DNA of 64,000 bases, taken from positions 1 through 64,000 of the forward strand of contig JAUPSS010000014.1 of assembly GCA_040285825.1 (NCBI GenBank), written 5' to 3'. Position 1 is the stretch's first letter. Every line of letters starts with the position of its first letter. Shown piece by piece: positions 20,624 through 23,900 of the stretch. A program made the translations under genes and the position numbers. Source of the DNA: Eukaryota sp. TZLM1-RC. Lineage: Eukaryota; Protista; Metamonada: BaSk clade. The notes under the pieces are model-generated. The model was not told the DNA's origin. It did not search any database and saw only the letters and a list, made by a program, of their open reading frames with translations.

Positions 20624-20954
20624 GAGTTCCGTATCTTGGTCGTCTGCCAAGGTTTCATGATCCTGCGAATCTTCATAGTTTCAATGATCAATGAATAGTA
20701 CTTAGACTAAACATCAATCCCACTGATGAGATATTGGGACTGTGTAAACACAATCCTAATCTTTATCGATTAAATTTGCAGGTCAATATATCATCCTTTC
20801 TAGGTTGGATACTAGCTTAGAGGCGTTCAGCTATAATCCAACGCATGTTAGCTTCACACCAATATCTTTTCAGATAAGCGTAAATACCAATTATGCGAAA
20901 CAACGGTTCCTCTCGTACTGGGTTGCTTTACTATTAGGATGACAATTATTCAGT
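20556..20954 (-). pseudogene. 28S rRNA 3' fragment (~400 nt, includes sarcin-ricin loop) downstream of a retrotransposon junction
   Basis: Matches 15205-15603 up to ...ATTATTCAGT, then switches to element sequence TTATTAAATC instead of AGGGTAAAACTAACC. Confidence 0.96.
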
Positions 20955-23900
20955 TTATTAAATCACAGATGCTGCTTATTGCTACGAATTATACTATCTG
21001 GGTGAGCATTCGATGGTAAACACAGTTCATCATATATCCCTTTCTGATTATTTCCATTGCAACCCATTTACCCAGATTTTTAAGTTCGTATTTTCTTAGA
21101 AATTGAATGAATGAAGCGTCTAGTCCACCAGATGGATAAAAAACCAAAGGAGTAACATTGTCCACCCATCCACTGTATTTCTCTATCTTCTCATTCTTGC
21201 TTCTTCCGATGGCTTCTTCAATGCACGAGTGGTACCCACCTACCATTGTTAAATCGTAACCATGAGTTTCGTTTGTATTTAGCAAATCAATTCTTCCTGT
21301 AAAAAGCTTTTGTTCTGTTTGAAGACCTGTTTTCTCAGCAATTGTTTTGAGAATAGAATCATGTTTGTCAATCCTCATTCTAGAAAATTGCTCACAGTTG
21401 GCTGAATGGTATAAGGAGTCTGCACAGTGACCACATAATGCACAATGGTGTGTTTGATGTCTGTGCATCAAAAGTCGGCATTTCAGTATATATCTCATTA
21501 GATGATCTGGCAAAGTAAAGTCTGCTGTTACAGGTAATGAAGTCAGTATAGTTCCTGCTAGGGGTTTACAATTGAGGGTGTAATCGTTAACTTTTGTTGT
21601 TGAGGAAATCTCACTATGCGTGTCTGGGGTCCTTAGTTGGACAAGAAACTCCTTTTGTGCCTTCTTGTAAAATTGGTTTGTGAGAAGGGATTGAAGTCTC
21701 TTGCCGTTATTGAACTCAGAAATTTCTGTTTTGACAAAAGTTGTGGATAACAGTACGTCATATTGGTCCAACAACTTGTCCAATTTCATGGAATTCATGG
21801 TTATGTTTGCTGATGCTACAGAGGCGTGATAACATAAATCAGCAATTTCGCAGTAATTTTTGAGCCCTAGGCCTCCAAAACTAGCTACTGGAAATGAAAC
21901 TAGTTCTTTGTATTTGGGTAATTGACCTAAAGTGTTCGTAATGAATTCAACTAAAAGATCGTGGCATGCTGCGAGAGCTTTAGTGGACGTTGTCGGTTTA
22001 TGAGTCCTAGCCGTAAACGAGAGTCGAGTGTTCAAGCAAGTTCTTATCAATAGTAGTTGATTTTGGATAGTTAGTTCAGAGATGTTGTTTATGCAGTTTC
22101 TAAATTCGTTTGGGCTTGAATTGTACAGCATTTCTTCTGCTCCAGGACCGACAAAACTACCTAACACAGTAAAAGTGTCTTCATTTGATAACGTGGATGT
22201 CTTATTAGTATTAACAGTGAGGTCAAGCAATTGAAGCGAATCGGTCATTTCTTCTATAATTTGCTGAGAACTTTGTACATTTGTGAGGACAAAGATATCA
22301 TCAAGATAAGCAAGAAATATAGAATCCGGAAAAAGTGTTTGAAGAATGTTGATTGGTTCAACTAATGATGTAGCAAATAACAAAGGACCAAGTGGGTCAC
22401 CTTGCTTGACTCCTTTTTCAGAAATTACTTCATCTTCTCCATAAAACAGACTTGATGGGGACAAGTAGCTAGTCTTGTAGAATGGCACTAAACGAGGGCA
22501 ATATTTTTCTAAAGCGCTCAACAATTTTCCTCGATTCAATTCATTGAACGCATTTGCTATGTCAAATTTGATACACCTTTCGAATTTGGATCCTAGGTTT
22601 TGTCTAATGGCGTGAATAATACATTCGGCTCCGCCTGATACTTTGACTCCAAATTGGTTGCTTGAACTTAAATACTCTGTATTGCATTTGTTCAGAATGA
22701 TTCTGGCGATGACTCTATAAAAAAGCTCTCCAATGGCGATGGGACGTAATTTGTTACTGGTTTTTGGCAATGCGATTAAACGGCTTGAGGTCACAGCAAA
22801 TTTCAGGCATTCACTTACTGTACCATTATAGAAAGAGTTGGCCAAAAAATGAATACATCTTATTATATTGTTATTCAGGCATTCTTTCAATAGTTTACCA
22901 TGCCAGTGAAATACTCCACCCTCTGAAGCTGGCATTTCTAAAATTGCGTCCTCCACTTCTTGAACAGACAATGTCATGGAATTAGTAAGAACTTCAGGTG
23001 GAGACTCATAATTTTGTAAGTTATCATCTTTGGGATGTAATCGATCAAGTTCTTTTTTCACTTCAGATTGGCTAAGAGATAATTGTGCATTGGTTCGTGT
23101 CACCATATTCATGGCTCTCGACAGTTCATTGTCCCTTATTAGTTCTTGAACTCTCTTCTTGTTTATTCCACCAGGGTTTTTCAAGGTATGCTTTGGAGCT
23201 ACATGTGAAAGCATGGAGTCAATCACTTGTGATGAGTCCGATCCTGTGTTAATCGATTGGATATTCGACATGAATTGAATCAAATTTACGATGCAAGAAC
23301 CGTTGTTGATCTTCAGGCAAACTAGTGGGAGCAGCAATAGATAACGGCACTTTTGTTCTTGCGAAATTGTAACATTATTTGAGATATAATCAATGGCATA
23401 TCTCCAAGACACTTTGCTTTTAAGCCTTGTGTAATTCAGCGATCCGAAACGTCGGGTGAGCTCAACCATTGTGTTACTTGATATTTCTGGAACCAGTTGT
23501 TCCTGGGGGCCTTGATGCTGGGAATTCCAATGAATATCAAATCCCCTTGTTGTAAATATCTGTTGGCAGCATGGGCATTTACAGAATTGATGAAGTAACA
23601 GTTCATCTTGCGTGAGAGAGGGGTGATTATCTTTGAGGTGAGAGCAAAGGTCCCGTGATCTTTCAAAATTATCATCGCAAAATGGACATACATTTTTACA
23701 ACAATTGTCAGTAACGTTTTCAACTGGTGGAAAGGTCATGGGCTTCATAGTGGCTATCGGTTCGGGTGGTCTTTGTTGGCTTAACTTTGAGGGGGTAAGT
23801 AGTTTCATGTTTTCACTTGTGTTTCCTTCTGCCCCCAGTTTGGCCAGCTTGTCCGCCATTTGATTCCCGTGATGACCTACATGAGCAGCAATGTTTTCAA

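Follow-up and report, generated by a model that had tools for sequence, protein, structure and literature searches.

To our knowledge, site-specific retrotransposons of the ribosomal DNA (rDNA) that carry a restriction-like endonuclease (RLE) have been described almost exclusively in animals (R2, R4, R5, R8, and R9), and one of these, R9, makes a long target duplication. R8 and R7 (18S), R4, R5, R9, and the planarian LIN9/24/26 elements, all of them retrotransposons that lack long terminal repeats (non-LTR) and target rDNA specifically, and all from animals, use different sites and show that several lineages with either an RLE or an apurinic/apyrimidinic endonuclease (APE) took rDNA sites independently. 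The Anopheles elements RT1 and RT2 (R1 clade) are 28S-specific and insert beyond the R1 and R2 sites, several hundred bp further downstream, in roughly the region considered here; they are APE-type and have two open reading frames (ORFs). The CRE group (CRE1/2, SLACS, CZAR, MoTeR, and Cnl1) of protists and fungi combines an RLE, a single ORF, and N-terminal C2H2 zinc fingers with strict targeting of spliced-leader genes or telomeres. Giardia (Fornicata), from the nearest well-studied relatives of the host treated here, harbors the RLE non-LTR elements GilM, GilT, and Genie, which are associated with telomere-proximal, rDNA-rich regions and which, as far as we know, have not been reported as 28S site-specific. 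The NeSL-related, U2 small nuclear RNA-specific Utopia elements, with families in oomycetes, have an 'archaeal' RNase H in which R replaces the conserved H (PMC4640811), and a 2024 review that covers the transposable elements of rDNA names no non-LTR element specific to rDNA in protists (PMC10946416). Here, we analyzed a stretch of 64,000 nt (hereafter the window) from contig JAUPSS010000014.1 of assembly GCA_040285825.1, labelled 'Eukaryota sp. TZLM1-RC', the organism being the free-living metamonad Skoliomonas litria (PMC11603281; genome paper PMC11316075). An original prediction, made from the letters alone, had proposed a candidate new, CRE-like retrotransposon at a 28S site in this window; the protein of the element is encoded on this contig. 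We consider it likely that this copy belongs to a lineage of site-specific RLE non-LTR retrotransposons common to S. litria TZLM1-RC, where it forms two families (F1 and F2), and to a second species, Skoliomonas sp. GEM-RC.

The rDNA of the window lies on the minus strand and includes two complete 28S genes (47556-50855 and 15203-18504) and one complete 18S gene, as identified with Rfam; 28S positions are numbered here on the 3300-nt TZLM1-RC gene. The 3' junction of the element and the corresponding empty sites are as follows.

20955-20988, minus strand: 3' untranslated region (UTR) of the element, 34 nt, ending TTTAATAA without poly(A)
20556-20954, minus strand: orphan 28S tail (28S nt 2900-3300, 401 nt), joined to the 3' end of the element (Rfam and alignment)
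15595-15612, minus strand: empty target site (15603/15604) in an intact 28S gene (alignment)
47948-47965, minus strand: empty target site (47956/47957) in an intact 28S gene (alignment)

Read along the minus strand, the stop codon TAA (20991-20989) was followed by the UTR (20988-20955), and 28S sequence restarted at 20954 with ACTGAATAATTG, placing the element/28S boundary at 20955/20954. Homology to the intact genes stopped exactly at 20954, the equivalent of 15603 and 47956, with 13815-15603 aligning to 19162-20954 at 99.3% identity, and the Rfam match of the isolated 28S piece (20556-20944) covered model positions 3006-3399 only. The empty sites read ...TTT(T)ACCCT/ACTGAATAA (the slash marks the insertion site), which corresponds to 28S nt 2899/2900, 35 nt before the sarcin-ricin loop at nt 2935, and the element is oriented in the rRNA sense. 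The position of the nick is ambiguous by 1 nt, since A is both the last nucleotide of the element and the first of the target. What had been predicted for the 3' end, namely a stop codon, a 34-nt UTR, no poly(A), and a clean join to 28S, was confirmed on the minus strand in every detail checked, and alignment likewise bore out that the same site is empty in both intact genes. The R2 site (GGTAGC/CAAATGCC, 28S nt 2194/2195) was intact and empty in both full 28S genes, and its distance from the insertion site, estimated earlier as ~710 bp, was measured as 705 bp. The T-run just upstream of the target differed between the gene copies at 47957-47965 and 15604-15612 (TTT in one, TTTT in the other), a homopolymer difference that may be a long-read assembly error; some of the 'frameshifts' seen in copies of the element could have the same kind of origin.

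Further copies were sought on contigs encoding members of the same 90%-identity protein clusters, so that the set is the one reached through annotated proteins rather than a whole-genome census; L002 to L009 denote other TZLM1-RC stretches and L011 a stretch of Skoliomonas sp. GEM-RC. Eight TZLM1-RC copies, distributed over contigs 1, 5, 7, and 14, had the identical 3' junction, and all continued into 28S nt 2900-3300, starting ACTGAATAATTG. Three of these belonged to F1 (the window copy, L002 ending at 15158, and L003 ending at 13503) and five to F2 (L004, ending at 13921 and 21275; L007, at 14555; L009, at 3809 and 12098), while a sixth F2 copy (L008) was 3'-truncated and rearranged. The two families were 43% identical at the amino acid level, and their 3' UTRs could not be aligned save for the final 8 nt, TTTAATAA. 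Comparison of the leader of the full-length F1 copy (L002:10504-15158) with that of F2 (L002:10504-11642 versus L004:16651-17789) showed 98% identity over ~696 nt and 93% over the next ~440 nt, beyond which F1 and F2 were unalignable at the DNA level, a pattern that would imply that the families recently recombined or that templates were switched between them. On contig 7, the tandem F2 units had the same 5' junction and the same private single-nucleotide polymorphisms (SNPs) and are therefore DNA-level duplicates. Contigs derived from reads of public runs of the organism also contained F1 (at ≥99%) and extended across the 28S/F1 junction by 30 nt in run X1 and 22 nt in run X2, and a 358-nt contig from an independent public run spanned from 28S into the F2 3' end. 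No alternative 3' flank of F1 was found among the read-derived contigs, and run X4 gave no element contig. On the 5' side, the read-derived contigs departed from the window sequence at 24903 and continued into the leader.

The closest non-self proteins came from 'Eukaryota sp. GEM-RC1', which is Skoliomonas sp. GEM-RC, a species whose 28S is 87% identical to that of TZLM1-RC. Its contig JAUFOQ010000012.1 carries three copies of a 5239-nt relative (40 to 64% amino acid identity), all of which end ...CCTATAAAA(A)/ACTGATTG at the homologous 28S nucleotide, with a 3' flank starting ACTGATTGTTAG of the species' own 28S. One of them lies within a single gene (28S nt 1-570, element nt 43-5239, 28S nt 2880-3277), and another is joined to spacer 908 nt upstream of 18S. 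Across the two species, the 28S tails were 99.5 to 100% identical to the 28S of their own species, while the element lineages differ by ~55 to 60% in protein. With 11 junctions at one nucleotide, in three divergent lineages and two species, site specificity is well supported. The original prediction had a single junction to go on; that base has widened to 11 junctions at the same nucleotide, within a copy set still bounded by annotated proteins, and diverse non-rDNA 3' flanks were seen in none of the fetched copies or read-derived contigs.

The window copy and the domains of its protein are listed below.

20955-24920, minus strand: F1 retrotransposon copy, ~3.97 kb, 5'-truncated (comparison with full-length copies)
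20989-24570, minus strand: ORF of 1193 open codons, 1155 amino acids from the first ATG at 24456 (P0001)
23830-24234, minus strand: RNase H, upstream of the reverse transcriptase (RT) (Pfam PF00075, E 2.8e-18)
23617-23691, minus strand: C2H2 zinc finger and a following second CxxC...H motif (translation; weak Pfam zf match; kept in F2 and in a third family, F3)
22159-22767, minus strand: RT core with YLDD (Pfam RVT_1, E 2.2e-20)
20992-21444, minus strand: CCHC motif and restriction-like (PD-(D/E)XK) endonuclease (alignment and fold)

P0001 lacks the N-terminal ~350 amino acids of the full-length protein, which in F2 (P0125) has 1500 amino acids and an extra N-terminal zinc-finger region. Since the first ~696 nt of the element are coding and are missing from the window copy, this copy is truncated inside the ORF and is probably non-autonomous. 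RVT_1 matches to P0001 and P0125 had E values of 2e-20 to 3e-24, with YLDD invariant, and Protein Atlas matches were to unnamed RT clusters only. The best solved relatives of the RNase H were bacterial-type RNase HI; its DEDHD residues are readable, with the catalytic H kept. At the C-terminus, the residues C, C, H, C, followed by H, E, D, D, K, were all invariant across 20 homologues. A fold search with an AlphaFold model of the last 296 residues (predicted local distance difference test score 75.7) returned R2 proteins as the top seven matches in the PDB (R2Tg, R2Pm, and R2Bm; E 2.6e-6 to 7e-4), followed by cap-snatching PD-(D/E)XK nucleases, and on this model the domain is predicted to be a restriction-like endonuclease. 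A PDB sequence search with the C-terminal 256 amino acids gave chance zinc-finger matches only, the RLE being visible by fold search. No Pfam match to an APE domain (Exo_endo_phos) was found in P0001 or full-length P0125. Given an RT together with a CCHC/RLE fold and no APE, the element is therefore classed as an RLE-type non-LTR element. Neither P0001 nor P0125 had a Pfam match to Myb, of which divergent versions could escape detection, and no Rfam family of hepatitis delta virus (HDV)-like or other ribozymes matched at E≤1 in a full-length F2 copy (L004:16400-21400) or the window copy, although divergent forms could escape here as well.

Set against the known systems, the element resembles R2 in that one ORF encodes the N-terminal zinc finger(s), the RT, and a CCHC motif with an RLE whose C-terminal fold matches R2Tg, R2Pm, and R2Bm best, in the precise 28S 3' junction in the rRNA sense without poly(A), and in its 5' truncations and extra 5'-junction nucleotides. 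It differs from R2 in its site 705 bp downstream, in carrying RNase H upstream of RT, in losing the upstream target by kilobases rather than a few bp, and in having a metamonad protist as host; at the sequence level, R2 is matched weakly (E 1e-6) and over the RT core alone. For the N-terminal Myb motif and the 5' HDV-like self-cleaving ribozyme of the R2 clade, neither Pfam nor Rfam gave a match, though divergent versions may be present. With the CRE group it shares the RLE, the single ORF, the N-terminal C2H2 fingers, the strict target, and a host outside the animals (protists and fungi for the CRE group), and some of the best named matches outside Skoliomonas are proteins of Kwoniella (Tremellales), but all copies of the element are in 28S rDNA and not in spliced-leader genes or telomeres. 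The single ORF, RLE fold, and lack of an APE match separate it from Anopheles RT1/RT2. Like the Skoliomonas element, Utopia is a site-specific RLE element with RNase H upstream of RT (PMC4640811); the Skoliomonas element differs in its 28S target and in an RNase H that keeps the H and matches bacterial-type RNase HI best. The 28S flank of the planarian LIN elements, as given in the Utopia supplement (PMC4640811), differs from the Skoliomonas site.

In a quick maximum-likelihood RT tree built from database matches alone, the 28S-site elements of F1, F2, and GEM-RC formed one clade (Shimodaira-Hasegawa-like approximate likelihood ratio test [SH-aLRT] 99), with the 18S-targeting F3 as its sister (SH-aLRT 99), and the fungal Kwoniella matches fell outside the Skoliomonas clade. 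We class the lineage as rDNA-specific RLE retrotransposons of metamonads with a new 28S site and an unusual outcome of 5' joining. The earlier proposal of an rRNA-sense, RLE-type, rDNA-specific element at a 28S site other than that of R2 is supported, and its CRE-like label stays tentative. Two metagenome RT proteins with RNase H-type Pfam domains (P0045 and P0022) formed a group of their own, apart from the Skoliomonas clade, which may mean that RLE-like elements with an RNase H are distributed more widely among uncultured eukaryotes.

Two other families were observed in the rDNA of TZLM1-RC. F3, a third RLE family (P0132/P0004; L005:9466-14358 and L006:9462-14363, contigs 1 and 4), has ~30% amino acid identity to F1 and a degenerate RNase H region. 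It ends ...AAATAAATTA(A) in the rRNA sense at 18S nt 1203/1204 (intact site ...GGTCCAGA/CGTGATAAGG), and its upstream target is also missing, the 5' flank being either upstream spacer or 28S nt 659 plus 644 nt of unassigned sequence. F4 is a 930-nt 5'-truncated fragment (L006:18253-19182) that lies antisense to the rRNA within an otherwise complete 28S gene, flanked by a 13 to 14 bp duplication, CGTGAGACAGGTT (28S nt 2876-2889). Both target flanks of F4 are kept, and its priming nick is 10 nt from the F1/F2 site.

The precise 3' junctions of the 28S-site copies were paired with variable 5' ends, for which the two flanks of the window copy provide the setting.

24923-47625, minus strand: upstream flank, ~49 copies of a 462-bp spacer repeat
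19162-20623, minus strand: 462-bp spacer repeats, 3.2 copies behind the orphan tail, ending at the 28S-3'-end motif joined to 18S nt 1543

The 462-bp repeat consists of the last 70 nt of 28S and ~392 nt of 3' external transcribed spacer (ETS), and a further satellite array of at least 33 copies occupies 1-15272; GEM-RC is without this satellite. Over both species, at least eight distinct 5' ends were recovered, six of them as junction classes in TZLM1-RC: full length with 4 to 6 T, full length with 20 T, and truncations of 14, ~697, ~1063, and 1578 nt. Full-length copies begin TCCCTGCAAC, preceded by 4 to 6 T in F2 or by 20 T in F1 (L002). The window copy is the one truncated by ~697 nt, that is, without the ~696-nt coding leader; its 5' boundary, which shows microhomology (TTGTA) to the spacer repeat, can be placed between 24905 and 24922, and the copy adjoins this repeat and not 28S nt 1-2899. 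The same repeat formed the 5' flank in five of the six TZLM1-RC classes, while in the sixth (L002) the flank came from inside an F3 element. A 5' junction shared by four full-length F2 copies, located on two contigs, lies 17 nt past the 28S-3'-end motif, in the loop of a 3' ETS hairpin, and this hairpin, just past the 28S end, has a 10-bp stem (TTGACCAATG...CATTGGTCAA).

In none of the 11 copies was 28S nt 1-2899 retained directly upstream. The missing upstream target ranged from 2.3 kb to >6 kb, the smallest loss being 28S nt 571-2879 in GEM-RC; the TZLM1-RC deletion sizes are estimates, because the boundary between the 462-bp array and the 1.5-kb repeats upstream cannot be fixed. Of the features that mark RLE-encoding site-specific elements (the R2/R4/CRE/NeSL/Hero grade), the copies show an RT with a YxDD core in one large ORF, a C-terminal CCHC motif with an RLE, the lack of an APE match, and one precise 3' junction with varying 5' ends, but not two kept target flanks with a short duplication or deletion. 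With no copy of classical structure, neither a target-site duplication nor a small deletion is readable, so that of the 5' junctions and duplications raised in the original prediction, the former have been recovered and the latter cannot be read at F1, F2, or GEM-RC junctions. A long target-site duplication of 418 bp (bottom-strand nick at 2899/2900, top-strand nick 17 nt past the 28S end) was considered and rejected, because the upstream flank of full-length F2 copies is the 70-nt 28S motif preceded by ETS and not 28S nt 2900-3300.

By analogy with R2, the reading that we favor would begin with a single large protein that carries, from its N-terminus onward, zinc fingers, an RNase H, a further set of zinc fingers, an RT, and CCHC plus RLE. 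This protein would nick the antisense strand of the 28S rDNA opposite nt 2899/2900, and the freed 3' OH would prime reverse transcription of the element RNA (target-primed reverse transcription, TPRT), yielding the precise 3' junction and the rRNA-sense orientation. Attachment of the 5' end would be imprecise, with frequent 5' truncation and with 4 to 20 extra T in full-length copies, and the 5' end would join kilobases upstream, with loss of the rDNA that lay between this point and nt 2899. A precise nick and TPRT with upstream joining is the simplest reading that accommodates both species. Several points weigh against it. No copy has the classical structure of 28S nt 1-2899, element, and 28S nt 2900-3300; the copies seen are only those reachable via annotated proteins; and no RNA runs for the organism were found among the public runs. 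Five of the six TZLM1-RC 5' junctions fall within spacer repeats, which in a standard unit are at least ~16 kb upstream, a bias beyond what random deletion would predict. The F2 copies of L007 and L009a, whose 5' ends differ, have two private SNPs of the 28S tail in common, only 3.2 to 4 spacer repeats follow each F1 copy before further rearrangement sets in, and the frameshifts in several element copies may be Nanopore assembly errors. The shared tail SNPs and the few repeats behind F1 hint at some co-spread with the 28S tail. As for the spacer bias, it may stem from insertion into sites already occupied, the resident copy being replaced, from breaks at replication-fork barriers in the spacer, or from template jumps onto 3'-processed spacer RNA, the last being suggested by the shared full-length junction in the 3' ETS hairpin loop, 17 nt past the 28S end.

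A bolder version, which we put forward tentatively and regard as possible rather than probable, is that the endonuclease needs the downstream half-site only, or makes no defined second-strand cut, with kilobases lost at each integration and occupied sites re-used so that residents are replaced. This would explain why a single kind of 'orphan tail' locus houses both F1 and F2, why a recombinant 5' leader is common to both (98% over 696 nt), and why 5' junctions fall in spacer arrays. If it is true, the lineage would actively remodel rDNA arrays, unlike a passive R2-like resident, giving rise to orphan 28S tails and contributing to the formation of the 28S-3'-end satellite. The enzyme could then also serve as a new rDNA-targeting tool, given an upstream half-site that we take to be identical in animal 28S.

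The precise nick with TPRT has to be weighed against explanations in which the junction is inherited rather than made anew. The mobile unit could be the element plus its 28S tail, with read-through RNA carrying 28S nt 2900-3300 and some 3' ETS/spacer repeats (3' transduction) and new copies entering or recombining into spacer arrays, so that the junction would descend from a few founders. The 462-bp repeats on both sides of TZLM1-RC copies fit this account, as do the one 5' junction in the 3' ETS hairpin loop common to four full-length F2 copies on two contigs, the two tail SNPs private to L007 and L009a, the 3.2 to 4 repeats behind F1 copies before rearrangement, and the end of the window unit exactly at the 28S-3'-end motif joined to 18S nt 1543. 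However, GEM-RC has the same junction without any spacer satellite, one of its copies sits inside a 28S gene with the natural downstream spacer, and the tails are 99.5 to 100% like the 28S of their own species despite ~55 to 60% protein divergence; the tail of the window copy, moreover, carries variants of the neighboring gene and array and not family-specific ones. We therefore judge transduction unlikely as the general explanation, although travel of element and tail together may contribute secondarily.

More improbable still is that one or a few ancient insertions were copied at the DNA level, through unequal crossing-over and subtelomeric rDNA exchange, with no ongoing specificity. Such copying clearly occurred for the tandem F2 units on contig 7, which share 5' junctions and private SNPs, and the rDNA loci are near contig ends and heavily rearranged, but it would have to accommodate three lineages with unalignable 3' UTRs at the same junction nucleotide in two species, as well as 5' ends that vary as TPRT truncations do. 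The sister family F3, in addition, behaves alike at its 18S site, and F4 has a 13 to 14 bp target duplication in a real 28S gene. The assemblies of both species are long-read and the region is highly repetitive (PMC11316075), with homopolymer differences and frameshifts visible, so chimeric repeat joins also have to be considered. The same junction on four contigs of one assembly and in the assembly of a second species, together with the 358-nt contig from an independent public run that crosses from 28S into the F2 3' end, makes an assembly artefact the least credible of these alternatives, with very little probability left to it.

The lineage is a new instance of site-specific retrotransposition outside animals, conserved between two Skoliomonas species. 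A deep-branching, free-living metamonad holds a whole radiation of such elements, with two families at a new 28S nucleotide near the sarcin-ricin loop, a sister at 18S, and an antisense family 10 nt away, which is relevant to the question of whether RLE elements were target-specific ancestrally. The lineage also adds a second case in which an RNase H lies upstream of RT, and it would offer a natural setting where exact first-strand targeting goes together with 5' joining that deletes kilobases.

Some further observations concern the structure of the rDNA arrays. Variants of the 462-bp repeat occur in local gradients, and the repeats flanking the element resemble each other and the array of the downstream gene. 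At 19162-19164 of the window, the third spacer repeat ends within 1 to 3 nt of the 28S-3'-end motif and is followed by 18S nt 1543; the downstream unit therefore keeps only the last ~240 nt of 18S. Comparable junctions follow the F1 copies of L003, after 3.96 repeats (28S nt 319), and L002, after 3.65 repeats (upstream spacer). The rDNA spacer of GEM-RC contains a 5S rRNA gene in the same orientation (L011:6306-6425 and 17250-17369); in the 64 kb of the TZLM1-RC window, none was called. The spacer upstream of 18S in the window (53613-62006) is made up of ~1.5-kb tandem repeats that are 95 to 98% identical and contain sub-repeats of ~160 to 350 bp. Within the upstream rDNA spacer of contig 4 (L006:2537-5073), we also observed the pol region of an LTR retrotransposon, with RT, RNase H, and integrase.

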